A stretch of 32,961 bases of DNA from Pelomyxa schiedti. Taxonomy: Eukaryota > Protista > Evosea. Under the pieces are notes generated by a model. That model was not told the origin of the DNA, searched no databases, and worked only from the letters and a program-made list of their open reading frames with translations. The stretch is from assembly GCA_020536535.1 (NCBI GenBank), contig JAHLWZ010000987.1, positions 1 to 32,961 on the forward strand, given 5' to 3'. This document shows, piece after piece, positions 1,223-19,470 of this stretch. Numbering within the stretch: position 1 is the stretch's first letter; the number at the start of each line of letters is the position of its first letter. A program made the position numbers and the translations under genes.

Positions 1223-2819
1223 TCATGGTGACTGGTGGTGAGTGGATTCATGGAATTCTGCTGGCCCATCGTTGTTGGTGACTGCTGTAGTAGTAGTGGG
1301 GGTGGAGCTTGTAGTTACAGAAGCAGAGGCAGCAAACTGTAATTATTTGGTTGTGTTGTTCATCATTGTCACCCTGATCGTGGAACCAGCCTTGAGATCC
1401 CTGGAAAGCAACATGTTTCCTATTGGCATCCCAATGTGTTCATCTAGCAAAGTCTCAACTTGGCAAGCTGACCCGTAGGCCAGGTCGGCAACAAACAGCT
1501 TGTCATCATCACCTATAATAAGAGTGACTCCATTCGCGCCTTTGACTCTCTTGGCCAGCCTGACAGGCATCAGTTCAACTATGCCAACGAAGTTCTGGCG
1601 TGTCAGGGGCTGGAAAATAACTAGTTGCGTAAGCCCATTGAGGAACTCTAAAAATAAAAGTCAATCAGTGCCACGGCACATACAGTCATTATATTTTTCT
1701 TAGATTAGATATGATCGGGTGCGATATGGGATATCTTTTTTTTACCTGGGCGGAACTTTGTGCGTACTAATTCAATGACTGAGTTAGAAACTTCCGGTGT
1801 CAGAGCAGCAGTTCCGGCGTCGTCTGGTGGAATGCTTTTCAACACAATATCAGATCCAATGTTTGATGTCAACAATACAATGGTGTGAGAGAAATCCACA
1901 GTTGTGCCCCAGGCTTCTGTCAGGCGGCCGTAATCCAGAACTGTTTGTTTTTGGGTTCCAAGTTAGTGTTGGACTGCAAACACAAAATAATTTCACGCAC
2001 TCTTGAAGAGAGGGAAGAACAAAAGGGATGATACTACCTTGAAGTAGGAGGTCACACAATTCTGGGTCAGCTTTCTCGATTTCGTCAAAAAGCACGACAC
2101 TGTGCGGCTTACGAAGCACTGGTCCAGTGAGCTGGCCACCTTGGTCATATCCCACGTAGCCTGGAGGGGATCCAATCAAACGTGCCACGGTATTCTTCTC
2201 CTTGTACTAGCAGATACAAAATGTGAGAATGTGAGTTAGGAGTTATAGTGTGCAATAGTGGGGAGCAACGCGCACACCTCGGAGCAGTCAAGGCGAATCA
2301 TATGACTTTCATCATCAAAAAGCTCTATTGCAAGGGCCCTGGCCACTTCAGTCTTGCCCACTCCAGAAGGACCCAGAAACTGATATTGTATAAGCAAGAT
2401 GAGTGAAAAAAAAGGGGGATGAATTATTATATTAGTAGTATGGGGGAACAAACAGTTACCATAAAGGAAAGGGGCTTATTTGTGGTTCCACTGGTCATGA
2501 TTGATCTTGCAACTGTGTTGACTGCCTTGTCTTGGCCAATGACCCTTCTGTGCAACTTCTCTGGCAGTTGCAGCAACACATCCCTTTCGTTTGTGTTTAG
2601 CTTGGTTGGAGTTATTCCAAATTCCAAAGCCATCATTGTACTATAGGTCTTAATATTGGAAATGGGGAATGTACTTGAATAAACGGGAATTATCCTTATT
2701 GGACAAAGCTTGTTTAAAGGGGGCCTATTCACTTTCTGCTCATTGAGGGATAACCCTTCGATATAGTTGACCTGCTTTTTTGTTTGGAATAAGTAAAACC
2801 GAATGTGAATTGTGCCCAT
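1223..2819 (-). CDS. ClpB/Hsp104-like AAA+ protein containing only NBD2 and the D2-small domain (multi-exon)
   Basis: Spliced exons give RVIGQDKAV, Walker [10 protein letters not shown], pore loop [11 protein letters not shown], Walker [18 protein letters not shown] and FRPEFLN. The start codon and last exon are tentative. Confidence 0.85.
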
Positions 2820-2884
2820 TCGATGGTTGTTGTATTGAGGCGGAGTTGTGCACCGCAGTTCGTCGTACTGGGTTTTTTTCTTTT

Positions 2885-3104
2885 GAGACGGGGCACTTCA
2901 CACGGAAGTGCCCTCTGTCAAAAATAAGTGGGATTGTGATATGCCTGCCTCCAAGTGTGCTTGAGAGGCATTTCAAAAATAGGTGCGGAAAAGCGGGATT
3001 AGAGCACAGCGTTAGCCTCTAGGACCCCCTTTAAAAGAGTTTCCCCAAGATCGCCGTGACAGACTTGTTCCCACACCAGAGCATTCACTCCCTTAGGTAG
3101 GTAT
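2885..3104 (-). ncRNA. Candidate novel U1-like Sm-class snRNA (5' end AUACCUACCU)
   Basis: TCCCGTAAT element at -62. U1-like 5' end. Closing helix GGGA-GTGA-ATGC/GCAT-TCAC-TCCC. 10-bp helix 3068-3077 with 2982-2991. Sm sites TATTTTTG at 2974-2981 and 2919-2926, each followed by a hairpin. G-U pairs favour the minus strand. Confidence 0.7.
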
Positions 3105-3157
3105 TTAGTTTTCCTAACAACCACCGGTTCGAACTTGACCGGCTTCCCCCCACTCCA

Positions 3158-3166
3158 ATTACGGGA
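3158..3166 (-). promoter_or_regulatory. DUSE-like element TCCCGTAAT
   Basis: One mismatch to WCCCAYAA. Lies 62 nt upstream of the ATACCTACCT start, versus 63 nt at the U1 gene. Confidence 0.6.
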
Positions 3167-3243
3167 CACCCACAACGACCGTTGTTTTGAGAAATGTTTT
3201 CTTCACTCACTCCTGGTGCGGCACATTCTGAAAAAGTCAGTCA

Positions 3244-6126
3244 TCAGACGCCATCGGTCATTTTGAATAGCCAGTCAAGGCCGTCAAGGACGCCATCACA
3301 AGTGATGGCACATGAGCCCCTAATTTGGTAGGGATGGCCAAATTGGGTGAGCAATCCAACTGAAAAGTACTCGGCGACTTCCTGTGGACTCATGCATGGT
3401 AATAGGTCCTGCTTGTTGGCTTTTTCGTTTTGGTTTTGTTAGATGGATTCAGTTAGTTTTTGGCAATCCTGGGGGGGAAGGGAAGAACCATAGAAGAGTA
3501 CAGGAAGACCGGAAAGCTCTGGAATGATCATCAACTGCAGGTAGGGGATTAGAAAGATGGTGAATAGAGTACATGGACAACCTTGTGGAACTCTGTCCTG
3601 GCTTCCTCTGCGCGATCAAGGTCACACGAGTCGACAACGAATATGATTCCAACTGCACCGTGATAGCCTTGTGGAAGTTAGAATTGTAGCTCGCCTTAAA
3701 AATTAACTACTCTGTTTCAAAAGTTGGCTGTATGTGATGCCTATAGATCATGAGTAAATTTCACCTGAACATAATGACATACAGGGCCAAATGTCCTGTG
3801 TAATGGTTAATGGCACGCGAGAATAGAAAAGAGCTCACCAAAGTAACAAAATGTAAATTCTTGAACTCCACTGTTTCAATATCTGATTATTTGTTTCATG
3901 CGTGTGTTCCAGTAAAAGGTTTTTCAAACTTACTGTACCCAAAGGAAGGTATGCTTGAGTAGCTCCCTGTATCATTCAACTTAATTTTATAAAGCATTGT
4001 GGTTTTTCCTAGAAATAAGATCATGAATGACAGTTAACTGGCAGGAGTACCTGCAGCATCTAACCCTAAAACTAGAACACGCCGCGGAATGGCATACCTG
4101 CTTATCCAATTGTGCACACCGAAAAAAATAGAAGAAAACAAAGAGTTATGTGGCTTGGAAGGTCTATAGATCTTGAGTGAATAAAATCCTTCCAAGGGAA
4201 ATCTTACGGGCTTCCTTCAGAAATGGCACATGAGGATAATCTTTTTGTTTCTTTGAGCAACGCTGCTAGATATCTCTTCTTCCAATTTCCATTGAATCCC
4301 CCCAATTTGATTTGAAGGTGGTCCTTGGAATAAGTGTAACATACAAAGAAAAGCTGAAATCAGTTACATTCATTAAAAATGCAGTAGTTCTTGACCAGGG
4401 ACGACTTTCATACAAAGTCTTCCAAATGTGGTCACTTGACGCAAAATGGTTCATTGTGCGGCACGTACAACAAAGTTTGCACAGACATGCAGCATCAAGT
4501 AGGGATAAAATGTGGCTAGGAAAAATTAGCAGCAACAAAAACAATTTCTTGAATACATCAGAACATTTGTATGTAGGGTTGCAAAAAGGCCTAACTCTTT
4601 CGAACGAGTTAATTTTGCACTTTACTTAAGAGAACACCTGTAGAAGTAGCAGGCGAGTTGTAGGGGGAGTAATATCTTACAACGCAAAAACTTCCAAATG
4701 AACAACAAGCAACATGGACAATGTCATTCTTCCCCTTAAGTGTGGCTATTTCTGTAGGTGTTGATCGATTGAGTGTATCTCCCAGGCCTGCAGACACTGA
4801 GATTTCGGAAAAAGGGAAATTGGAGGGACACACCAAGTTGCCCATGTTCATTTGATCCCCAACTATAAACTGAATTCTTTTTTGTGACAGCAATTGAATG
4901 TGAAGCAGTGCAACCAGCGGCAATTTGAGCAATACCATCAATTGCTACAAGGCATGGAATGTTACGATTTGCATTGTCTCCAAGACCAAGTTGGCCCTTG
5001 CTGTTTTCCCCAAATGAAAACAGCATTCCACACTCGTTTACTACAAGGGAGTGACTATCTCCACAGGCGATTTGTGTGACGGTACTTCCTTGAAAAAATG
5101 TAACACTTTCAGGAGAAACCTTGGAACACTACAGACAAGGTTACATTATTGTAGGGATTAAGTCATTTCACACGTAATCTCCATTTCCTATACTCGGTTA
5201 CACACTGAAGGAAACATGGAACATGTGGACGCACCAAGTTGACCTTGAAGGCCAAAACCCCAAGTGTACAGCGCACCTTCCGTGGAAAGTGCAAGGGTAT
5301 GTTTCGATCCCGCAGCTACTTTTTCAATTCTAATGTTGTGACTGAAACAACAGAGCCTAGGAACATTTGCTTGTGGCCTGTAAATTAGACCTGGGGGGAA
5401 GAGGAACTAAGTACACACCTGGAACACTCGCCAAGGGGTGCATCACATTGGTCATCAGTTACATTTCCTAATGAGAAAAGTGGCCCATATCTCGGTTCGG
5501 GTTGTATTAGTAAATGGTCCCCACCAGCAAAAATGTTACGGAAAACTACAGGCCCTTTGATATTCTATCAGTTCCATACTCTGGTATACAAAGAAGTACA
5601 TACGGATAAAAAAATTTTTAGGCAATCTGTTGCACCAGCTTGTACCGCTTGGAATAGAGGGCACTTCCAGGTCCCACACCCATATATGGTCATGAGTTCC
5701 AGAAATTGTCCACACAGTACTTCTTCCACAAGTTAACCTTTTGAGCCACAGTCAAAAATTTCGAATGGCCTCCCACAATCACATTGAAGCAGGGAGTCCT
5801 ACGTGCTGGCTCGATACGGGCCAAAAGGTAATTTCTGAGGAGCTGGAGCTTCACTCAGGCCCCACACCAAAATCTCCCCAGCAGCCAGCACGGCAACGTG
5901 CCTACCAACAAAATCATTCGTGTCATCAAAATTTTGAGCACAGTGCAAGAGGCTTTCGTTTTTTTGTTGTTGTTTTCTTGTGCCTTTGACCACAAGAGAC
6001 GTGGGTTATTCCACCCTCTAGTCCAGACAAACACGGCACCAACGTCGGCGTCGTTACGGCCTCCCCTAAAGCTACACCCTCACCAATTGGATGACCCCAG
6101 TAGAACACCTCCTCCACTACGGACAT
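3244..6126 (-). CDS. RCC1-repeat + F-box + ARF-family GTPase fusion protein (multi-exon)
   Basis: RCC1 repeats VAAGSKHTLALSTEGALYTWGFGLQGQLG and IACGDSHSLVV...FGENSKGQLGLGD. F-box HILSLLDAACLCKLCCTCRTMNHFASSDHIWK. ARF motifs VLGLDAAGKTT, GIIFVVDS, ANKQD, SCA and DGLDWL. Stop TGA at 3244-3246. Confidence 0.85.
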
Positions 6127-6295
6127 GAATCAAATCAACAAAATTTTTTCCTTTCGCCGTTCAAACGCTTCGACGGCCAACGAAGCGACCACGTAGGCTT
6201 GCTCATTTTACGTCGTGGGTTAGTCAACGAGCTCCGTATGCCGCCACGTATTGAACACGCGTTGCCGTCCCTCATCAGTACTACTGTGCGTAAGT

Positions 6296-8011
6296 ATGAT
6301 GCAGTCGCTTGTGGAGAGAGTGCTTGGGGCGCCCGAGTGCGTGGCGACGTCGACGCCGACCAAGCCCACGCTGACGGGGGAGCGCATGCGGTGCGTGCAG
6401 TGGTGGGCGCCCGGCGACGTCAGGGTGGCCGACGACAGCCGCCCGGGGATGGCCGACCCGAGAGACGCGGTGGTGCGGGTGTCGGTCGCGGCCATCTGCG
6501 GCTCGGACCTCCACCTGTACCATAATGAGCTCAGGGCAATGCAGCGCGGCGATATTCTGGGCCACGAGTTTGTTGGGGTGTGTGCAGTGCGTCGTTCCTC
6601 GTGATGTGTTTTGTGAGTTGGGGATTCGGCTTTGTTGTTGTTGTGTAAAACAAGAGGGTTGGATAGAACGAATAACCTGTTTAACTTCTTATTTTGTGAT
6701 GTGTAACTCTGTTGTCAGGTTGTGGAGGAAGTTGGGCCAGAAGTGCAAAATGTCAGAAAAGGGATGAGGGTTGCTGTGAGCGCAATTATTGCTGATGGAA
6801 CCTGTGACTACTGCAAAATGGGCATGTTCAGCTGCTGTGACACTACAAATTCCAGTGGCCTGATGGAGAAAGCAAGTCAACTAATTCATTGACAATTCTT
6901 CTAAGTTTGTTTTAGCTGTTTGGACATAGGACTGCTGGTCTCTTTGGCTATTCAAACTTGACAGGTTTGTCCTATATTTCACCTATTTTATCCAACGCAG
7001 CATTCACAGGAGCTTACCCTGGTGGCCAGGCACAGTTTGTTAGGTTTTGAGGAACTATTACCAGTAGAGGTGGTTTTTTTTTTTAATCCCAACCAGAGTT
7101 CCCTATGCTGATGTGAACTGCCTGGCTCTGCCCCCAGAGATAGAAGATGACATGGCCATATTTCTTTGTGATTCTCTGTGCACTGCTTGGCATGCAAATG
7201 ATATAGCACATGTTGGATCGGTGTTCCACAAAAATGTTGCAATATGGGGTGCGGGCCCAATTGGTTTATTAGCTACTGCTTGTGCTAAGGTATTCTCTTT
7301 ACCACGATTTTTCATCGAAATTTGACTTCAAAAAGAATAGAGGAGCAGAAAAAGTCATTGTTATCGACAGTGTCCCTCACCGATTAGAGCTGGCTCGGTC
7401 ACTTGGTGCTGATGGTATATTTCCCAATCATTTGTGCGGAGTTGACTTTTCCCACAGATGTTATCAATTTCAGAGAAGAAGATGTACTTGGTGCCATAAA
7501 AAGATTCTTCCCAGGTGGTCCTGATGTGTGCCTTGAATGTGTTGGATTCAGATACACGAAATCGTTGCTTCACAAAGTGGAGAAAACCTTGATGATGGAG
7601 ACTGATAGCATAGACACAGGCACGATGTTCTCGAATTTAACCTGTCTAATGAATTTATCAGTATCGGAAATAGTGAAAGCTGTTCGCAAAGGGGGGACAA
7701 TCAGCCTCATAGGGGATTTTCTTGGCTACACCAATCATTTCCCAAGTACCGTATTCTCTTTTCTTGGGTTTTTTCTCCCTAACACGAACCTAGTTGGAGC
7801 ATTAATGGAAAAGTCTATCACAGTTGTTGGCGGACAAGTTCATGTTCAAAAGTACTGGAAGCTTCTATTAGACAAAATTCTCAAAGCGGAACTCAACCCA
7901 ATGGCCATTGTGACACACAAACTTCCCCTTGACAAGGCACCTGACGCCTATGCCATGTTCGATAGCAAGACTGATGATGTTGTCAAAGTACTGCTTCTAC
8001 CTTGGCAATAG
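6296..8011 (+). CDS. Zn-dependent medium-chain dehydrogenase, formaldehyde-dehydrogenase-like (9 exons)
   Basis: ICGSDLHLY, LGHEFVG, structural Zn C-xx-C, FGYSNLTGAYPGGQAQFVRVPYAD, IWGAGPIG, THKLPLDKAPDAY. Confidence 0.93.
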
Positions 8012-8349
8012 TATCCCAAAGGAATACACCCTAGAACACCCGAATCAATAAAACCCCTGAGTTCAAAAAAAACCAAAAGATTTTCAAAAACACATGTTTC
8101 TACGAAACCCAGAAAGATGCGATGAGGAGCGGGGTGATAAGGACGCCGACCCCTCAATTGTGGGAATGAGTTCTTTGCTTGCACAGGCTCGTCGAAAACC
8201 GAGAGTCTGCAGAAGCAACTATGATAGGTACGAAAACCCACCACACTCCGCGTTTGTAATGACTGAGTCAATTGGCGAGTCCCTTTCAATTGGAAGGGAA
8301 AGGAGCTCCTTCAGTCGACGATCGCACTTCCAGAATCACTAAAACAAAG

Positions 8350-8767
8350 AGTTGCCCCAATGGCTTCGATTGTGTTATTATAGAACTACCATGGAAGCAT
8401 AAAAGTGCCCAATGTTTACCACACCCTATCTGATGAACTCTCGGCACTGCCCGTAGCCGTTCTGCTCAAACCACACTCTCGTGTGGCAGTGTGGGTAACA
8501 AATGACCCCAGGCTCTTGGTGTTCACTGCCCAAACTCTTTTTTCCCGTGACATCGCCCCGCGCGGCGTTCCAACCTGCACGAAGTGCTCCTCCAACCTCC
8601 CGTCTACCTACTACAACACCAATGAGGCGGTGTTGGACAGAACTACCAGGGCGACAGCTCCACGACTGAACAACAACCCCGGTTCTGTGAGTTATTTGCA
8701 AGGCATTTGGAGAACTTTCACTAGTTGGGGAAATCAAGTTCTCTTGTTCCGCACGAGAGCCTGTTGA
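8350..8767 (+). pseudogene. Degenerate MT-A70 / METTL4-like N6-adenine methyltransferase
   Basis: FDCVIIELPWKHKS (DPPW motif altered), LPVAVLL...VAVWVTND, ELFARHL and FTSWGNQVLLF. Frameshifts near 8409 and 8717. Central region apparently missing. Confidence 0.7.
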
Positions 8768-9298
8768 GGCACAATGGAAAACTTCCGTTTGCTTGCACCG
8801 GCGTTGTGGTTCACTTTCATGGTCAGCCAGTGCACAGAGGAATGGGAACCTCATGATCACTGGGGGAGCCAAATCCTGGTTATCTGGCTGCGTACCACAA
8901 CCAATAATAGTTACACCACGAAATCACTTCGACAAACATCATTCCCAGGGGTCGAAGCAACAACTGAGACTATCTTCGTTCAAAGTTGTTGTCCCTTTGC
9001 TCCACGTCATTCCCCTTGTGTAATGACTCACTTTACCACAAGCTCCAAGTTGGGGTCGTCCTGGTGACATAATTGTTTCAAACTGTAGGCTACTACTGCT
9101 CACTACAACCACGTGCCTACGACACATAACTACAGGGTCATTTCTAACCCCAAACCGAATACCCCCTCTGGGAGCAAAAAGTTCCGCGCCAAAATTTTTA
9201 CTTTTTAAGGGAAAATTTTAAAAAATAACAATTTAAAAAAAAAAACGGGAATAACTACCGGCAAAGAAGAGACAGCATGGAGAAAGTACGTCTAGTGG

Positions 9299-9520
9299 AG
9301 GAGTGCACTTGGGAGTGTCAACAGGTGCATAGCGTCTGGAGTGCAGTGCATTTGGAGCGGTGGGTGCATTTGGAGAGTGGTTGCAGTTTGGGTGCATTTG
9401 GAGCAGCAAGGAGCATTTGGGAGCATTTGGGAGCAAAGAGTGGGTGGTGTTGTGCAGTTTGGCTTGGGGTGGTGTGCATCATTTGGGAGCAGTTTGGGGT
9501 GGTGCATTCATTTGGGGATG
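9299..9520 (+). repeat. Degenerate G-rich minisatellite (GTGCATTTGG / GCAGTTTGG units)
   Basis: Roughly ten imperfect copies of GCATTTGG or GCAGTTTGG with GGT/GGA spacers. Confidence 0.8.
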
Positions 9521-9563
9521 GTAGTGGTGGGATATAATAATAACAGCCTTTCTGATAGATAAT

Positions 9564-9717
9564 ACAGGCGGGGGAGCCTCGTGCTCAGCACCGCCCTCAC
9601 TCAGTGAGGGTGAAGAGGTTCCCCTACAAGCCGTGACCAGTATTTTTGTGGCTGCGGTTGGTGTTTTGGTGCCGGTTCGCCCCTGAAACGCCATCCTCAC
9701 CCGGCAACACCCCCTGT
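9564..9717 (+). ncRNA. Candidate Sm-site structured small RNA
   Basis: Helix 9571-9580 with 9615-9624 encloses two hairpins that both have C-TCA-G loops. Sm site TATTTTTG at 9641-9648. Long 3' hairpin capped by GG-TTCG-CC. G-U pairs favour the plus strand. Confidence 0.55.
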
Positions 9718-9828
9718 TTCAAAGCTATCCAGTTTTCTACTCGCCAGTGCACTTTGCTTGAGAAAGCAAATACCTGAATTGATTTTTGTTTCGCTAGCAG
9801 ATCCAATCTTCTTGCAAAAACAAAGGGA

Positions 9829-10571
9829 ATGTCGTGGGACCAGCACGTGACACGGCGTACCGAAAATGAACTGGTGATAAAGGCAACAGGAAAGTCAATC
9901 ACAATAGTATGTCCCACAAGTTGTTACATGGTTTTTAGTGTTGTTGTTTGCTTGTTTTTGTACTTTTTGGTTTTGGTTTTGAATGGGCGGCGGTTATTGA
10001 AGAGGGTCTGAGGAGCGAGAATATTATTAGGAAAAGGAGGAGTCACCAATTTGGGGACATACTGCTGGTCAATTGGCACACAATTGGGCTCAATTGAGAT
10101 TCGGCAAGTTGCTGCTCAAGTGGTCTGATGTGTGCACTGAATCAGCAATTGCTTATTACTGGTATACATCGATTGTTGTGGCAATTTCGCGTCTATATCC
10201 CACATTTCATTTTTGTTTCACCATCGTATCTGAGTTTGCTTTAATACACTAATTATGCAGTGTAACTCATGTCATTAAAACAGTGATATTGGAACAGAGT
10301 TCTCGCATACACTGGAGTTAATTGACGAAGCAACTGGCGTAACAAAGGAGATATCAGTATCAGTTACAAACATGAGAGATGCCACAAAGAGCAGTGAGAA
10401 GAAGTACCCAGAAAACATGCAACATTGGCTTGATGCTGTTCTTGGTGGAATGGGTATTCTCTTTCCTTATCGTGATATTATTTTCTCATTTGGGCAATAG
10501 GAGTACCGGCCACCATAGAAAATTGGCAAGACTTTGCTAAACACTTTTCTCTTGCAAATTGGACAATTTGA
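9829..10571 (+). CDS. Hypothetical protein (about 155 aa, 4 exons)
   Basis: GT-AG splicing gives a continuous frame MSWDQHVTRR...EKEESPIWGHTAGQLAHNW...DIGTEFSHTLELIDE...GVPATIENWQDFAKHFSLANWTI*. No family recognised. Confidence 0.55.
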
Positions 10572-10623
10572 GGTTTTTAATTCCAAAATGTCTTTTTTTG
10601 TGTGTGTTTAAGGAATCGATTAT

Positions 10624-11637
10624 CTATGGTGTGCATTTTTTTGCAGCAAACAGAGAATCAACAAAAGATGTGGTTTGTTGGTTTGCACTAACAGGATCGT
10701 GGGTATCCAGCATTGTTTGCAACCAAAAATTTGCTGCTTCAATGGCACAGTTCTGGGCAAGGGCAAGGTGTTGCTGGGCCTGTGCAAAAGATGTAGCACC
10801 ATAGTTGTCCCATTTCACCATTTCCGACTTGTAAGCAACGTTTGCTACAATTGCCTGTGAGCAGGTTAGGTGTTTTCAGTATGCCAGGGTTCAAACTGGA
10901 GATTCTAGCCGGCATTGGTTGTCAAATTCGTCAGCAGAGTCTTTTGCTTGTGTATAATTCAAGGGAATGAAGGAGGTGTCGTAGTTCGAATAAAATTCAG
11001 AGGCTGCAGCAACAAAGGTGTAAACTGGATCACCATAGTCTTGGAGGAGGCGGAAGTCAAAACCATTGGTGCTCTTTGTAAGATAAGTGTCAACTGCCTA
11101 TACTTAGTATGAAGTATCAAGCCTATAACAAAAAACCAGCAAATTCCAGCTCATGGTCATATTCAGGAGTGAGGTAGCCGTCGGAATGGTGCCCAACCAT
11201 ATCTTCACAAAGGTGCCCACCTGTGGCAGGTGTAGGTGACGAATGGTAACACAAAAGCCAATACCATAACCAACAGAAAAGTTGTAGGTATCAAAAGAGG
11301 CAGAAGTGCAACTTGAATTAACCAAAACGCACAACAACTGATATCCAGCATATACCAGGCCGTGCATAGTAGAACGAAGCCCCTTGAATGCATCGGGAGC
11401 AGAACTATAGATAAAAAGAGATTACGGGCAAAAAAAAAAAAAAAAGTACTGGGACGGAGAAATATGGTAAAAAGGGGGTCTGAAAAACCTGCCCAAAACA
11501 AGAGGCCCATTTTGTAGCCCTTCGTCAGATGCGTAAGATCCAAATACTTGGTGAGTGTACGGACCCCAGCACTCAACAAATGCACATCCGCAAATGACAA
11601 CCAAAGTAGCCGCAGCGAGGAAAGAAAAAGATCCCAT
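10624..11637 (-). CDS. Secreted zinc-dependent phospholipase C / S1-P1-like protein (multi-exon)
   Basis: Signal peptide, then WGPYTH, LG-SSAPD, H, and GGHLCEDMVGH, the metal-ligand pattern of the Zn-PLC fold. Confidence 0.7.
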
Positions 11638-11970
11638 TGTGATTTGTTGCGTTATTGGACTAATAGGTTTTCGTTCTGTTCATCACGTTGATTGCGATAA
11701 CGGTTCGCCCGGAACTTTTGGTGTTCAAACGAGATCACCTTGATTTCTTTGCTGTTGATTAATATTCCTCACTCAGAAGCAACGCAAGACCAATCAAGTG
11801 CGCTCATGTCCAAAGCAGAAAAACCCTGGACCAATTGGTACCCGCAGCCTCCAACCCCATTCTCCCCGAAGAACAACGAAATAGGAATCGAGAAAAACCA
11901 AAGCAAATCTCAAGGGGAAAACCATCAAGCCCTCGAACGAGCGTTACTCTCGTGGTAGTGGTGGAAAACT

Positions 11971-14900
11971 ATGCCCGGAAAGAGACGTCGCAACAACGTA
12001 AGGGACGCACCGAAAGCGCCTTTCTCCAGCGGCGACGGCTTCCAGAAGGTTCGCGGCGGCAGATCTCACTACAACAACGCCAACCTCAACAAGAAAAAGC
12101 CTGCCTCCTCGTCTTCGGCAGCGTCGTCGTCGTCGGCGGCGGCGGCCGCTGTGGCGAGCCAAAAAGCCGCGGTGCAGCAGTATCGCCAGCAACGCGAGCA
12201 ACAGCCGACGCAGGAGCAACTGCAGCAGCGCGAAATGGAGAAATTCTGGATGGGTGTGAATGTGCAGACGCAGGGTGACGTCACCACCGAGCTACTTGTC
12301 AAATGCTTCAACTTGTCCCCCTGCCCTGGTTGGTTTTTATTTCTTCCTGCCAAAACCTATATCAGAGGGGGTTTCGCTATTTTAAATTACTGTTAGGAGA
12401 TGTATATTTAAGCACTTCACACTTCATTAATCAATGGGGAAACAGGAAAGCACACACTGTGTGAGGGAAGACCATTATGCCTTGCATCTGTGGGAACTAG
12501 TTTCAGTAAAGATGCTGACACAGCATTCACCAAAAAGCTTGAAGCTGAAGATCCTGCATCTAATCTCCGCACCAAATATGCTGGCCTTGTGGTAATTTTG
12601 CTCTGTGGGAGTTCACACCAGTAACTGAACTGTCCTCTTTCAGAATATGGGAGCAACCTGCTATTTGAACAGTTCCCTACAGGCACTGTTCCACTTGAAC
12701 TTGTTTAGACATGTTGTATATCAATGGAGTGAGGATTTGCAGGTAATCTCCGAATTGTACGATTTGTCTATGGTGCAGCAACAAACAAATCGCAGGAACC
12801 CCCAGGAGCTCCCCCAGAGCTTTCTATCATTGCTCTGGAGCTTCAAAAGCTTTTTTGTTCAATGCAGCACTCTCTTCATGCTGTTGAGGCACCTGGGAAT
12901 TTTGTTCGTGCCCTTGCTCTTACTCCATCAATTCAACAGGATCCTGATGAGTTGTAAACTTTTATTGTTGCCTCCCCTAATAGGCACATAGGTTTCTTAA
13001 ATTATTCATGGCGTGCCTGGATAAATGTTTCCGGTACAGCTTGAATCCCAGTGTAAAGAATCTCATCGCTTCACATTTTGAAGTATGCAAGGGAGAGTGA
13101 TATGAGCTTACCACTTGCTAGGGTAAGTTGACAAGTGTTACCAAGTGTAAAGTGTGCTCTACTCAATCTGAAAAAAATGATGTTTTCCTGGCACTTGGGT
13201 GCAACGTGAAGGTAAAAGCGGGTTCTCTTTTCCGAGACATTAACTCATTGGGAGTAGGGTTCCTCGTCCTTGGAAGAATGTTTGTTGTCGTACCTGCAAG
13301 AGGAAACACTCACTGGGGACAATAAATATCCTTTATTTTTAAAGCATCTTTCCCAGCGTTTTTTCTTAACAGTAAAACATATTTCTGTGATAACTGTGCC
13401 CAGCTGCAAGATGCTACCCGCAGTATATACCTTAAGGAGCTTCCTTCAGTACGTTACATTACCCAAGGTTCTTCAACTCTAAAATGGTTCCTGTTTAGGT
13501 TCTTATAATTCACTTAATGCGATTTGTTGTTGAAGTTGGAGCAAGTGGCTACACCAAAAAAAAATTACGAAACCCTGTACAATTTCCTTTGAGACTTGAT
13601 ATGGAACGATACACAAGTGAGAAGCATCCCTGCAGTTCTTATCGGCTGTGTGCCATTGTTCTCCACAAGGGTCCTTCTGCAAATGGAGGTCACTATGTGT
13701 GCAATGTTCAGCCAGAGGGGTAAGCACCTTCGCTATGACGCTCGTTTTTCAAAAAGAAAAAGGCAGGACAACTGGTTCGAATTTGACGACACTGTTGTCT
13801 CCTCCAAACCCAATGTAACTGACCTGACCGCTGCCGGGGAAGATAGCGTGAAGCAGGCAGGAGCAGGGTACCAATTTTCCGTTTTCTCCTTTTCTTTAAA
13901 TATATTACTTAGCAAAGTGAGTTCTACTGGAGCATATCTACTTTTTTATTGCCGTGAAGATAGAGAAGCTGTCAAAGATCCCGTTGCTCCAGCAAGGTTT
14001 TCCATCAATTCTTCCCTCCCATTTTCTTAGAAGAACAGATGGGAACAGTTGGTTGAACAATCAAACCAAGACTATCTTCAGGAAATTGAGAAATACACGA
14101 AGCATAAAGAAGAGGCAACATCTGTGCGTGAAATTCAGAAAGAGTTGTATGCCTCAATTTTCTCTATGTCGAAAGCTCTTCAACCTGTATGTGCAAGTTA
14201 TTAGGCAAGTACTAAAACATCAAAAGGATGCGTCATGTTTTTGGGTTAGCAAATCTTGGCTAAAGCAATGGATTACCTCTGATAAACATACAACGTCAAT
14301 CGACAATAGCGATATTGTTTGCCCTCATGGGAAAGTATCTCCAGCAAAAGTGTCACAGATGAAATTAATTCCACAGGTTTTTTCCCTTGTATGTTTAGTT
14401 CCCTGACCAATTTTCTCCTCGTGCTTAGTGTGCCTGGAACGCAATATTTTCTCACTTCGGGGGGGGCCCCACATTACCATTTGAGCCTTGCTTCGAGTGC
14501 CTGAAAACGTTTTGTACAGGTTTCTACAACAATATCCACAAAGTTATTTAACTGGGTCCTCAAGAGAAACATGACAATGCTACCTTCGAGCACCTTCGGC
14601 AGGAACAGATCGCCCAAATCAGGGGACTTCAAAATAAGTCTTTGAATCCCTCTGATTGTGTGTGGGTAGCAAAACAATGGCTTCAAGGCAAGAATCATTG
14701 TACTAATTCTATTTATTTAGAATCATATTAGATTGGTGCAAGCCGGAAAGAACAACGGAATTACCCCAGGATATCAACTTGGCACTCGTCTGTAAGCACA
14801 AACACATTGCTCCAGAAGCGAAAAAGCAGTTGATTCCAATTGCAGTATTTTCTTTTTGTAAGGAGTGAATTACTTAACTTTCTAGATTTGGTCCTATCTT

Positions 14901-16417
14901 CAAGTATTATTCCCAGAGTCGACCCTTTTTCCGGGAGAGGTTAGGAACTTCTTTTGTGGCAATTTAATAACTGTTGTTTGATTAGGAGTCAGTTTGCCCA
15001 GAGTGTCCTGTGGAAGAAGATGCAATGCAAGAATGGCGAAAAGCGCTAAAGGAAGAGAAAAGAGCATGTAGAAAACTCCTGTGGAATGCCCTTGGAGGCA
15101 CCAACACCCTGTCTTGCATTGATGAAGTGACAAAGCCTGGAAAACTCTTGTTGGTAATGCGTCTACATTTTCCCACCTTCGTCAATGAACGTTTGAAGGT
15201 ATCCAAACAATGGGCCCAGATATGGGTATCCTGGGTATCTGGCGAGGTCTTGGATGAGCCTCCTTCAATAAATAACAAGTACCGCAACTACCCACTACCT
15301 TGCATCCCTAAATAACATACACACAAGAGATCTGCTTTGCGAGCACAATCTCCTTTTATATGACCCTTCTGCAGAAGACTGTGCCCTATTAGTGACAGCA
15401 GAAAATTGGAGGCACATCGTGGACAAGTCTGCTCTCCTTTTCTGCGGTACTTTACACTGAAATTTTCTAGATATGGCAATCCAACAACAGTGGAAGTCGC
15501 CCAAGTGACTGTAAACACTGCTAGGACATATCAACCAAATGTTTGCTCTGTGTGCAGGAAAGCCCGGCTCGAAAGAGAGGCAACTCAAAGGTTCTGTTAA
15601 TAGTTAGAGATCCTTTTGATGCGTTAATCCACAACAGAAAGCAGTTTGTGGATCAAGACTTCTGTATTGAATATAAACGGTAACAACATCAAACAATAAT
15701 GAACAAGTTTTAACATTCATTAGAACTGGCAAAAAAAAAAAAGGTTAAGGGAGTGCTTTACCAAAATAAAATTAAAATGAAAAGGGAAAAACCCAAAAAT
15801 AACCATTTCTGGAATTGCGTATACAACGACAATACAAGAAGTGAAGCTCAACATCTTTCAGGTGTTCCTCATTGAAATATTTACATTTAGTTGCCAAAAC
15901 TGATCTATTAACTCAACTTTGTTGTGTGCAAATTCCAGTAGGTAAGGGAAGATTTACCCCCAGCACATCAGCACCTTTTTACCGATAATGATATTCCTCT
16001 GGAAAATGACTACAGCACCCTTAGTTCCTACGGTATTACAGCAGACAGCACTTTATACCTTCGTACGAGCACGGAAACACTGGAAAGTGTCGATGGTAAT
16101 TTGATACACTCGTGCCTCTTTCTTTTTTTTTTTTTTTTTTGATTCTAACACACTTTCCAGAATTACCTACTAGCCACGCAAAGGAGACCGGATTTGAAGG
16201 TAGTGTGTTCCACTGCATGGAAGAAAGAGCCTGCCTACGAGCCAGCAGCCCCACAACAACAACAACAGCCACAACATCAACCTCACTCACAACGTCCTCA
16301 TCATGTGAGGATGAGGGTGATAATGAAGTAGACCATGAATCGGGTGATGACAGTGCCATTGACGAGGAACCCAACGACGAGAACGAGTTCCACCAAGAAG
16401 AAGGGGAAGACACATGA
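11971..16417 (+). CDS. USP48: Ubiquitin-specific protease USP48/UBP26-like (USP + DUSP + UBL, multi-exon)
   Basis: Cys box GLVNMGATCYLNSSLQ, His box LHKGPSANGGHY, WFEFDD, DUSP repeats (WVSKSWLKQW...IVCPHG), C-terminal UBL and ETGFEGS motif. Confidence 0.9.
13326..13378 (+). other. U12-type AT-AC intron in the USP48 gene
   Basis: Donor ATATCCTTT, branch site TTTCTTAAC (13362-13370), acceptor AC. Removal restores GDNKYFCDNC. Confidence 0.9.
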
Positions 16418-16516
16418 AGGGGTAGTAAAAGAGTAGAGACTAAAATATATTTTCCACAGTTTGTGTTTGGTTTTTGGGTGCACCATATTCTGTTGCACTA
16501 TTCCGTGCCTGTTGCT

Positions 16517-17435
16517 TCAGTCATGGGGTGGTGTGTTGCCTGAGTGGATTATAACAGTTGGTTGTTGGTTATCGCTGTGGTTGTCTAGTTCCACCTCAGG
16601 GAAACTGGTGTGCTTTGGAAGTGAATGCACTGGGAACAGAGGCAGTGCTTCTGTATTTAAAGTGAGAAGTCTTGTACCGTGGATAGGTATTACCTGACAC
16701 TTCAGCGATGGCTATGTAAATCGCTAATAACCCAACACCAATGCCTTCAATGCCCCCGATGATTTGAATCACTTTTGCTCCCTTCTCCAGGCTATTTGAG
16801 GATGATTAAAATAATAAATAGTTTCATGAATATATACCCTCCGGCAGAGAGTGCATCTGAAATTCCCAGTAAAACAAATAAGATTACAAGAGTGCCGAAT
16901 AGACTACGTAGCATCCAGTTCAAACGAAGCTTAATTGTGCCAAAGAACATTCCAGCAGAAAACAAGCCCCACATAAACAGGTACGCAGAAACGCTACCCT
17001 ATTGGCAATCAGAATGTAAACAAGGTTATGATTGTAATAAGCACTCACAGCATCGAGAGGAAGTGCCATCCCAAGATCGGGAAGGAAGTGCATAAAACAA
17101 AAAGAGATCCAAAATGAACCATATGCAGTGAATGCAACCATTGGGAATGTATTGCCCTTTACAAATTCGAGAGTGCCAGCAATTAACTGCAATTTACATT
17201 TAAAAACCTACAAAGTGGGCATGCATCGTCACACCTGAGCAAAGCCACCAAAGAAAAGGCCCATTCCGAAAATCATACCAAGACTCGACTCGCCGAGTAT
17301 GTGAGCATTCCTTCAAGGGGAAAAAACCAAATGAGTTGTAGTGACAGAAGAGAAAGCAACAAACTTGAGGTTGAGTAAAGTTGTTGTTAGCCCGAAAGCA
17401 GACAGTCCCAACGGTCCTGCATTACCCAGCGGCAT
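16517..17435 (-). CDS. GPR1/FUN34/YaaH (SatP/AceTr) acetate channel (multi-exon)
   Basis: GNAGPLGLSAFGLTT, FFGGFAQLIAG..EFVKGNTF, AFTAYGSFW and several hydrophobic helices. Confidence 0.92.
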
Positions 17436-17655
17436 GGTTTCGTCCCTTTCAACTAGTATTTCGTTTTTTTTTCTACTTTTTTTTTTCCCTGTTGTCGCTG
17501 GGGAAATTATATGTGGATGTAAAGAAGATTCCGAGATAGCATCAGTGAAGAATTTTGCGGAAGAGGAGGTGGAATCAAACACGGAGTATCAAGCTTAATC
17601 AAACTGTGGCACATCCCTGAACATTCTTGAAAGTTCAATTTTTCCCTGGTTGGCC

Positions 17656-17664
17656 AACCATAAT
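17656..17664 (+). promoter_or_regulatory. DUSE-like element AACCATAAT of the U1 gene
   Basis: One mismatch to WCCCAYAA. Starts 63 nt upstream of U1 +1, matching the known Dictyostelium DUSE spacing. Confidence 0.7.
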
Positions 17665-17718
17665 TCCGTTTGCCCGGGGGCCGTATTCCCAGCGCGAAGT
17701 GTAAGATGTGTTCCTTTC

Positions 17719-17878
17719 ATACATACCTGACTGCGCACACCCTTGATCACCAAGGACGGGTGTGCTGTGGTGACTCCCGACTTGCACTCCTCGGCGGTCG
17801 CTGCATGAATTTCCGAAAGGAAAGCTCAGCAGTGTAATTTTTGTTTCGCTGGGAGCCGGCGCTCTGCGCTACTCCCTG
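17719..17878 (+). ncRNA. U1: U1 snRNA with variant 5' end AUACAUACCUG
   Basis: Helix H ACTGC/GCAGT. SL1 GCACACCC/GGGTGTGC with loop GATCACCAAG (U1-70K site). SL2 loop CTTGCACTCC (U1A site). SL3 TTTCC-GAAA-GGAAA. Sm site AATTTTTG. SL4 GGGAG...CTCCC. Confidence 0.95.
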
Positions 17879-17970
17879 AAAAGATGAAAAACAATGGCTT
17901 GGGATCCCTCTGGCAAGGGATCTCTTCATCTGAATCAAACGAAACTAAGTAGGGGCGTAACAGCGAAGAA

Positions 17971-19118
17971 ATGAGTTGCGTAGAGGCACCCACAATTACT
18001 GAGGTGGCGAGAGGTTGGGGAGTAATAGTTACATTGAAAAACCTCTTGCAGTCGAGGCACGGGTATGTTATTCATTTCCGGTCTCCTCTAAAGTAAACAG
18101 AGACTCTCGCGGGGAATTGTTTTCGGTTTGTGTGTTTGGAATCGGCCTTTCCGGTGGATTCTCACCTGAATTTGCTGAGGTTTCGTGTGCCCTAAGGGCT
18201 TATTCCTGTAAGTGTGAGCAGGGCTCATGCAACTGCGACCACAATTGTGCCAATAAGGTACCGTGTGAGCTGCATGTTGTGGATATCTGTGAGGAAGCAC
18301 TTCGAAAAGTGTCAGCCTCAACAGTGCAGTACTGGCCACCACACCCCTCATTTATGTACAATATGCCAGAGAAACGCATGTCAGTTGTGCAGCTGGTCAT
18401 GGATTGTTCAACAGCGGTAGCATGTGAAGCTGTCAGTGCAATGCCGTTGGAACACGAAGAAAGTACTCAAGTGACACCACAACCATGTGATATACCTCCC
18501 CCTCCACCTCCGACTCCACCTAAAAGCCCCCTGAAGAGCTTGATGGGAAATGACATTGGCAGTACCACATGGAGAATTCGTGAAATCCACTTCCCAGAGT
18601 GCAAGTTGGGAATTCCGCGAGTCGAGAATCTTATCGGAGAAGCTGCAACGACTGTATGTCCCATTGGCAGGCACGTATCATGCAAATGCTGTGCCATTGT
18701 GACTCACTTGACAGACTTTTCCTCAGTCGTGATGCAGCCATCATCTTTTGACTGCATTATTGCCATGCACTCATTGCTTTACCTCTTCAATCCCAAGGCG
18801 TATGGTGCAACAATACTCAGCACAACCAGCTCCCACAATTGTGAAATGCCCAAGTCAGCTCGCCGCTCCTACTGCGCGGCACTGGCGAGGGCTCTAAAGC
18901 CCACTGGCGGGGCATTAGCCATCAGCTCAGAGACTTACTATATGCTCACGGATGTAGAACACCTTGGTGAGATTGGGGTGTCCAAGCCACCGCTGGCCTC
19001 CAGCCATCAAGTGTCATTATGGGAAGGCCACTGGCCACCTGGTGAATGGGTGCTACTTCGAGAGCCCCACAGTTCCTCGGTCTGGGAAACTTATGTATTT
19101 TGCCGTCACCCTGCCTGA
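17971..19118 (+). CDS. Class I SAM-dependent methyltransferase-like protein, CheR-like motifs
   Basis: One short intron after MSCVEAPTITEVAR. Motifs VCVFGIG, LHVVDICEEAL, FDCIIAMHSLLYL and ALKPTGGALAISSE. Confidence 0.65.
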
Positions 19119-19291
19119 AGTTGTTCTTGAAGAGACATAACATAAGAAAAAAAAAAGTGACCACTCTCAATGTTGCCACCTTCATTGTCCCGCTCATAAT
19201 CCGGAGTTGGAGGTGCAGTGAAGCTTTGCTACTTGGGGAGATGCCGCCCGAGCAGGATTGTTCCAAGAGAGGTTGTGTGCCAATTAGACAT

Positions 19292-19470
19292 ATTTCCACC
19301 TGCTTCAGTTTGGATTACGGGATGGAGGCGCTGGTGCCTTAATCTAAAATCGCCGGTGAAGCTGATTTGCTGGCGATGGATTCTGTTGTTCACCTTGTAA
19401 TTCACAACTGAAGGAAGATCGGTTTTTGATGATGCATGATGGCACCGGGAAATTGTCAGTCCATCTATTT
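19292..19470 (+). ncRNA. Candidate structured intergenic RNA (long hairpin)
   Basis: 19303-19326 pairs with 19389-19413. Inner hairpin ATCGCCGGTGAA-GCTGA-TTTGCTGGCGAT. Then GGTTTTTGA and a GAAA-capped hairpin. Confidence 0.4.

Follow-up and report, generated by a model that had tools for sequence, protein, structure and literature searches.

Roy & Bowser reported that U1, a small nuclear RNA (snRNA), reads 5' splice sites with an arm containing ACAAAC in Entamoeba and ACGUAC in Mastigamoeba, and that in Physarum the standard arm is accompanied by ACAUAC (bioRxiv 10.1101/2022.06.08.495308). In Physarum polycephalum, an amoebozoan, this amounts to a U-to-A change at position 5 beside the standard ACUUAC, and donors of the GUAUGU type, with U at intron position +4, are favored; the archamoeba Mastigamoeba balamuthi carries a U-to-G change at position 5, which was read as the complement of a +4 C, and in Entamoeba, likewise an archamoeba, the arm has co-evolved with the donors (bioRxiv 10.1101/2022.06.08.495308). 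In humans, several U1 paralogues (variant U1 RNAs), some of them with altered arms, are transcribed and processed (PMC3561869, PMC5159530). The present work deals with a stretch of 32,961 nucleotides (nt) from Pelomyxa schiedti (GenBank assembly GCA_020536535.1, contig JAHLWZ010000987.1, here C987), referred to below as the window, for which a preliminary description had proposed that a family of specialized U1-like small nuclear ribonucleoproteins (snRNPs), represented by four candidate genes within about 17 kb, is used instead of one U1. On balance we consider it likely that the window encodes a single U1, belonging to a class with A at arm position 5 (A5), that the genome contains three old U1 classes, that the second RNA of the window (hereafter X) is an orphan snRNA other than U1, and that the two remaining candidates, at 9540 and 19292, are not snRNA genes.

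Only two exact matches to ATAC-N-TACCT occur in the window, ATACATACCT at 17719 on the forward strand and ATACCTACCT at 3104 on the reverse strand, and they bear A and C, respectively, at the letter expected to read +4, as had been described. With one mismatch allowed, the motif alone gives 5 matches in the window vs 4.5 expected, which is chance level; the position of the arm, at the start predicted from a promoter element, is not due to chance. The shared promoter spacing was confirmed: a CC(A/G)TAA element lies ahead of both RNAs, with its CC at -61 for the U1 and at -60 for the RNA starting at 3104, and in both RNAs a G+C-rich 3' hairpin comes after an Sm-type site, AUUUUUG. All 23 U1 loci of the genome with upstream flank have this element, in the wider form CC(A/G)(T/C)AA, between -58 and -63, and it also precedes U12, U2, and U4 genes; it is the general snRNA promoter of P. 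schiedti.

The sole member of an Rfam family detected in the window by the Rfam scan was a full-length U1, with the following features.

17719-17878, forward strand: predicted U1 snRNA gene of the A5 class with arm AUACAUACCUG (Rfam RF00003 and model R2)
17657-17664, forward strand: proximal promoter element ACCATAAT, core CCATAA, with the CC 61 nt upstream of the U1 start
17719-17729, forward strand: 5' splice-site reading arm, with A at position 5 (17723) where the standard is U (19-gene alignment)
17745-17755, forward strand: stem-loop 1 loop GAUCACCAAGG, a site of U1-70K type (GAUCA..AGG invariant in 19 genes)
17782-17790, forward strand: stem-loop 2 loop UUGCACUCC, a site of U1A type (GCACU invariant in 19 genes)
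17836-17843, forward strand: Sm site AAUUUUUG, ahead of the stem-loop 4 hairpin (sequence and fold)

This gene matched RF00003 over model positions 1-166 with 75.2 bits (E 4.5e-17), the curated cut-off being 69.5 bits, and scored 139.7 bits with R2, a species-specific model built from 19 U1 genes of P. schiedti. Position 5 is the sole departure of its arm from the standard, the start being placed by the promoter element at -61. Both protein-binding loop motifs and the Sm site were found, and the stems are backed by covariation over the 19 genes. The gene is solitary, with no head-to-head partner. Judged from its sequence, it appears to be a genuine, functional-looking U1 snRNA gene of the A5 class.

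The whole P. schiedti assembly (52,367,397 bases in 5337 contigs) was then searched with RF00003, which recovered 25 U1 loci. Arm position 5 of the full-length genes is U in 8, A in 10 (the window gene included) and G in 2; the remaining loci are one hybrid and four short copies of 139-140 nt. In the alignment of the 19 intact genes (7 U, 10 A, and 2 G at position 5), arm columns 1-4 and 6-11 are invariant in every gene and only position 5 varies; constancy also extends to the GAUCA..AGG of the U1-70K loop, to GCACU in the U1A loop and to the Sm core. Body identity reaches 64-68% inside a class and only about 50% between classes. The consensus structure is paired in 91.7% of cells, with changes on both sides at 33 of 39 pairs; none of 500 shuffles matched the observed covariation, and sliding the partners lowered pairing to 40-55%. 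Since arm and loops are invariant while the bodies have diverged and the stems covary, the classes are old lineages, all selected for U1 structure and each with a fixed letter at position 5. In U6, the ACAGAGA region is identical in all 19 genes, so that the variation is specific to U1. Altogether, the core of the proposal holds genome-wide, in the form of three conserved U1 gene classes, and does not hold as a four-member panel in the window, where just one candidate out of four is a U1.

At seven loci (contigs C455, C448, C966, C290, C171, C716, and C1082) a U-type and an A-type gene stand head to head, spaced by 140-300 bp around a common palindromic promoter region. Partner genes co-vary between loci (for instance C171 with C716, and C448 with C455), and the U/A pairs were therefore copied as units. 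The hybrid locus, C22:72485-72641 on the reverse strand, is also head to head with an A-class gene; it combines a U-class body with an arm whose letters 5 and 11 are A and U, scores 53.9 bits, below the Rfam cut-off, and may be a conversion product or a decaying copy. The short U1-like copies lack stem-loop 3, carry the arms AUACAUACCUAA or AAACUUACCUAG and have a weakened Sm site; two of them are identical and inverted, 1.3 kb apart, and they could represent either pseudogenes or a short form of U1. The RF00003 search placed them as follows.

C1151:13912-14050, forward strand: short U1-like copy
C1151:15335-15473, reverse strand: short U1-like copy
C918:64-202, reverse strand: short U1-like copy
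C918:246-385, forward strand: short U1-like copy

The genome was also scanned in a pattern census of the arm plus the stem-loop 1 loop. It gave 31 matches vs 1 in the control and no U1 genes beyond the known loci, and with C fixed at position 5 it gave zero matches, i.e., no C5 U1 with a canonical body was found in the assembly. Six ATACTTACCTGT...GATCA matches were discarded, being the antisense of a CAG|GTAAGTAT donor in a repeated gene; other promoter-plus-arm matches (C59, C873, C1460, C100, and C638) were antisense donor sites or chance. The repeated gene or element that mimics a U1 start on its antisense strand is present in at least six near-identical copies and constitutes a trap for pattern-based U1 searches. 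Its copies in the pattern census are listed here.

C174:5259: copy of the U1-mimicking repeated gene
C294:9306: copy of the U1-mimicking repeated gene
C482:43647: copy of the U1-mimicking repeated gene
C1186:3179: copy of the U1-mimicking repeated gene
C2434:99: copy of the U1-mimicking repeated gene
C4804:20: copy of the U1-mimicking repeated gene

Compared with the related systems, the organization in P. schiedti differs in several respects. Neither a third (G) class nor head-to-head U/A pairs are described by Roy & Bowser for P. polycephalum, and for M. balamuthi a single U1 candidate was reported, whereas in Pelomyxa the G class, with its two genes, is a minority beside the U and A classes. 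Entamoeba has one U1 per genome with two changed positions and a uniform GUUUGU donor, meaning that the arm was replaced and no panel was formed (bioRxiv 10.1101/2022.06.08.495308). The human variants are minor and differentially expressed beside a dominant U1, unlike the variant classes of Pelomyxa, which are old and as numerous as the standard one. A literature search returned no paper on Pelomyxa U1, the matches for Pelomyxa and snRNA being concerned with minor introns or transfer RNA arrays. The three-class U1 panel with paired genes is a new form of a phenomenon already known, single variant arms having been published for related amoebae.

The single-cell assembly of P. schiedti (52.4 Mb, 5337 scaffolds) contains 149,016 introns, or 7.43 per gene, of which 98.41% are GT-AG and 1.59% GC-AG (PMC8887013). 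RNA evidence for the window consisted of contigs assembled from two single-cell runs and placed on positions 2500-8499, and the contig joints support eight introns in a gene resembling alcohol dehydrogenase.

6297-8010, forward strand: alcohol-dehydrogenase-like gene
6578-6718, 6872-6915, 6965-7009, 7044-7096, 7290-7335, 7415-7457, 7620-7661, and 7746-7793, forward strand: its eight RNA-supported introns

The donors of these introns, in the same order, are GTGTGT, GCAAGT, GTTTGT, GTTTTG, GTATTC, GTATAT, GCACGA, and GTACCG. The heterogeneity earlier attributed to local donors is thus borne out in part, by a diverse set that includes GTTT and GCAC, and GTCC, GTGC, and GTAG, which had been listed too, are not among them. 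The +4 letter is U in five introns, C in two, A in one and G in none. When the arms are compared over donor positions -3 to +6, the best-pairing one is that of A5 for five donors, that with G at position 5 (G5) for two and that with U at this position (U5) for one, and a C arm is best for none. Two of the eight introns, 6872-6915 (44 nt) and 7620-7661 (42 nt), are of the GC-AG type. The introns of 42, 45, and 48 nt are in frame and without stops, so that a gene finder may take them for coding sequence. Calling introns ab initio over some 149 kb (bridging of open reading frames, chain dynamic programming with iterative retraining, and strict-flank filters) was dropped because in the controls GA, TG, CT, GG, and AT "donors" gave as many calls as GT; between two and five of the eight known introns were recovered, and no donor statistics were drawn from these calls.

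Position 5 of the U1 arm faces intron position +4 in the U1 snRNP, and U6 reads +4 to +6 later in splicing. It can be proposed that each U1 class forms an ordinary U1 snRNP. In this scheme +4 A and, by wobble, +4 G would be read by the U class, +4 U by the A class, and +4 C and, by wobble, +4 U by the G class. The three classes would jointly add one base pair to very degenerate, pyrimidine-rich donors, with U6 remaining uniform. We infer from the eight introns that the arm spectrum is linked to donor usage, and the classes may divide among them the labor of reading +4.

The RNA encoded at 3104-2886 on the reverse strand, the C variant of the preliminary description, has the features listed below.

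2886-3104, reverse strand: apparent orphan Sm-type snRNA gene X of 219 nt, one of four genomic copies (homology, fold, and promoter)
3158-3166, reverse strand: X promoter element TCCCGTAAT, core CCGTAA, with the CC 60 nt before the predicted start
3095-3104, reverse strand: 5' tail AUACCUACCU, single-stranded in the predicted fold
2974-2980, reverse strand: first Sm-like site AUUUUUG, within a multiloop, invariant except for one inserted U in one copy
2919-2925, reverse strand: second Sm-like site AUUUUUG, directly 5' of the 3' hairpin, invariant in all four copies
2890-2915, reverse strand: terminal G+C-rich hairpin, in which the C609 copy has C-G for a U-A pair (compensatory)

X folds with a z-score of -3.84 relative to shuffled sequences. 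The genome holds three further copies with 88-96% identity; the similarity reaches about 70 nt into the promoter and about 40 nt into an A-rich 3' flank, and outside these limits the surroundings do not align. The promoter element is retained in three of the four copies. The stems contain two compensatory and three wobble-compatible changes and are paired in 97.5% of cells; pairing drops to 36-53% with slid partners, and 25 of 500 shuffles equaled the observed value, the alignment comprising only four close copies. X shows the generic marks of an Sm-class snRNA gene of the Pol II type, that is, promoter spacing, Sm sites, 3' hairpin and A-rich 3' flank, and it appears to be a real family of snRNA-type genes. 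No snRNA genes were found beside the X genes. The search for distant relatives was negative, as model R1 recovered only the four copies and an exact 22-mer search of metagenome contigs was empty.

X resembles canonical U1 (RF00003) in its AU start, in YACCU at positions 6-10, in a closing helix around inner stem-loops, in the Sm site and 3' hairpin, and in having the same promoter element and spacing. It differs in that no U1 model matches it, in its length of 219 nt, in its two Sm-like sites, and in an arm that varies between copies. A 256-nt stretch containing X matched no Rfam family at E<=10, R2 gave the X copies only 6.6-7.2 bits (6.6 for the window copy; E about 1) with the arm alone aligned, and neither the U1-70K loop (GAUCA..AGG) nor the U1A loop (UGCAC) is present in any loop of the predicted X structure. 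For these reasons X does not appear to be a U1, and the former assignment of the C variant to the U1-like RNAs was not sustained. With respect to the tail, letters 1-6 of AUACCUACCU are those of the U2 5' end of P. schiedti and letters 6-10 those of U1. Of ten letters in the window copy, nine agree with the U1 arm; no two copies have the same tail (AUACCUACCU, AUCCCUACCU, AUACCCACCU, and AU--CUACCU), and across the four only CYACCU is retained. Since U2 also starts with AUACCU, only the YACCU of the tail is specific to U1. The tail has undergone four events over 11 positions and the body about 28 over 204 (p about 0.07 by a Poisson estimate); in the U1 arm, ten of eleven positions are changeless across 19 far more diverged genes. 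Searching the genome with a 19-mer complementary to the X tail (up to 3 mismatches) gave 11 matches, four of which are the X genes, vs 11 in the control. Most likely, X is a lineage-specific Sm-class snRNA whose 5' tail would not be a constrained splice-site reader.

Several points weigh against the interpretation favored here, i.e., a single A5-class U1 in the window, three old classes in the genome that would share the reading of +4, and X as a non-U1 RNA. The RNA contigs do not cover the snRNA genes (the U1 gene lies outside 2500-8499), and a single gene supplied the eight introns behind the donor spectrum. Full complements of the A5 arm show no genomic enrichment (AGGTATGT 1679 vs 1764 in a reversed control, AGGTATGTAT 117 vs 100). 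Such k-mer counts are low in power, as even the A5 target shows no enrichment; the C5 target is roughly two-fold lower than its control. Long pairing with any given arm must therefore be rare, and with only 1679 occurrences of AGGTATGT in a genome of 149,016 introns, donors matching a whole arm must be rare as well. Such loose donors limit the importance of the panel, and a selective advantage of one additional base pair would be putative. In addition, the core C-Y-A-C-C-U is common to all four X tails, which leaves room for splice-site pairing. Part of this evidence would suit a different explanation, in which the U1 classes are redundant or differently regulated (e.g., stage-specific) isoforms, donors are recognized mainly by proteins and position 5 has little effect: whole-arm-complementary sites are not enriched and the donors are degenerate, yeasts, Giardia, and Trichomonas have kept a standard U1 despite donors with +4 U (bioRxiv 10.1101/2022.06.08.495308), and variant U1s of human and other animals are known mainly as regulated isoforms (PMC3561869). 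We regard this explanation as rather unlikely. Each old lineage has its fixed letter at position 5, and the remaining ten positions of the arm are constant, while body identity has fallen to about 50%, which argues for selection on the arm, position 5 included; moreover, the classes fit the pyrimidine-rich +4 of the local donors, and arm and donors co-vary in related amoebae (bioRxiv 10.1101/2022.06.08.495308).

Regarding X, it could be argued that it adds a fourth U1-like reader, rebuilt in structure and bearing C at position 5, directed to +4 G donors (AG|GURG), the arms of its copies being deliberately diversified. The single-stranded tail starts exactly where the promoter element predicts, C5-Y6-A7-C8-C9-U10 is present in the four copies with one U-to-C change at position 6 that leaves pairing to a +3 purine intact, position 11 of the C4 copy is G as in U1, and the topology (tail, closing helix, inner stem-loops, Sm site, and 3' hairpin) resembles that of U1. 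This reading is nevertheless doubtful, considering, besides the failed model searches and the missing protein-binding loops, that the tail accumulated its four changes although the bodies differ by only 4-12%, that just five of its letters are U1-specific, that +4 G occurs in none of the eight verified donors and could already be paired by the U-class arm through wobble, and that AGGTAGGTAT, the perfect target of a C5 arm, occurs 43 times in the genome vs 89 in the control, again a count of low power. A complete four-letter set of +4 readers in Pelomyxa, composed of the three U1 classes and of X on a new RNA scaffold with individually diversified copies, is somewhat less probable still. Identification of X as U2, U4, U5, U11, or U12 was rejected because canonical genes stand elsewhere in the genome (at least 30 for U2, at least 8 for U4, at least 18 for U5, one for U11, and one or two for U12). 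The missing U4atac of the minor spliceosome offers another identity, in highly divergent form: U11, U12, and U6atac (C841:53279-53397) were located and 90 minor introns have been reported for P. schiedti (PMC10639083), yet the U4atac model (RF00618) matched nothing in the whole assembly at E<=10, so the U4atac of this organism would be either very divergent or in the unassembled part. GCUAAC in X faces GUUAGC in U6atac, and a stretch of 10 bp plus 9 bp upstream faces the stem II strand of U6atac in the correct order; the constrained pairing score of -30.2 is attained by 2% of genomic windows and 6% of shuffles. We consider this identity improbable, as the pairing is marginal in two copies and at background level in the other two, the change U58C keeps an intramolecular pair rather than the pairing with U6atac, no obvious K-turn is present, the 5' end of X is extended by 38 nt, its closing helix is long and backed by a compensatory change, and its copy number is four vs one or two for the other minor snRNAs. 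Least credible of all is a spliced-leader RNA that would give its 27-nt 5' part to messenger RNAs (mRNAs) at the GU of position 28. Although X combines Sm sites with a GU after a short variable 5' segment, Amoebozoa are not known to use spliced-leader trans-splicing, 219 nt and two Sm sites would be atypical, the GU sits in a conserved helix, and no leader was seen in the one mRNA contig examined.

The other two candidates, which had been put forward as structured Sm-like RNAs preceded by weaker U1-like sequences, did not withstand scrutiny.

9534-9701, forward strand: rejected candidate, fragment of a dispersed repeat adjoining a GGAGCATTTGGG-type satellite (repeat search and alignment)
19292-19470, forward strand: rejected candidate, intergenic stretch between a 367-codon open reading frame and a cullin-like gene (copy search, fold, and Rfam)

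The candidate at 9540 is part of a dispersed repeat that has at least 27 partial copies; the repeat search gave 34 fragmentary matches over 27 places, with 69-98% identity. In the repeat alignment the "arm" is not conserved and the "Sm site" was made by an internal deletion in the window copy, and no promoter element was found at -60. The GGAGCATTTGGG-type tandem satellite occupies 9300-9530 on the forward strand, directly upstream of the repeat, whose fuller copies show inverted ends of the form CTGATAG...CTATCAG. The repeat may represent a small mobile element inserting at, or carrying, the satellite. The candidate at 19292 is single copy, folds with a z-score of -1.63 (12 of 200 shuffles were as good), and shows no relevant Rfam match and no promoter element on the forward strand. 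Elsewhere in the window, a promoter-like TCCCACAAT at 8164 on the reverse strand lies 60 nt ahead of a short stretch with GUGUUUUUGAAAA (about 8104-8030, reverse strand). This stretch overlaps the dehydrogenase-like mRNA at its 3' end in antisense and could be a small Sm-type RNA gene or a chance occurrence.

In relation to the other snRNAs, P. schiedti has a U2 of 215 nt, encoded at C129:20844-21058 and at about 30 further loci, that begins with AUACCUUCUCGG rather than AUCGCUUCUCGG. The U6 3' region opposite this start reads CGAGAAGUAU and matches it, and helix II therefore seems to have co-varied.

The X family represents an undescribed Sm-class snRNA in a lineage in which the search for a U4atac of the minor spliceosome was negative. 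As for U1, its arms are almost invariant across eukaryotes, even where the donors are mismatched, and each of the few arms known to have co-evolved is a single replacement. With three U1 classes that are equally intact and distinct only at the base that reads +4, the genome would offer a natural test of the share of U1 pairing in the choice of 5' splice sites, in an organism in which many of these genes are hard-wired as U/A pairs, with 7.4 introns per gene and very loose donors. In such a setting, depletion of a single class should act according to the +4 letter of the introns.

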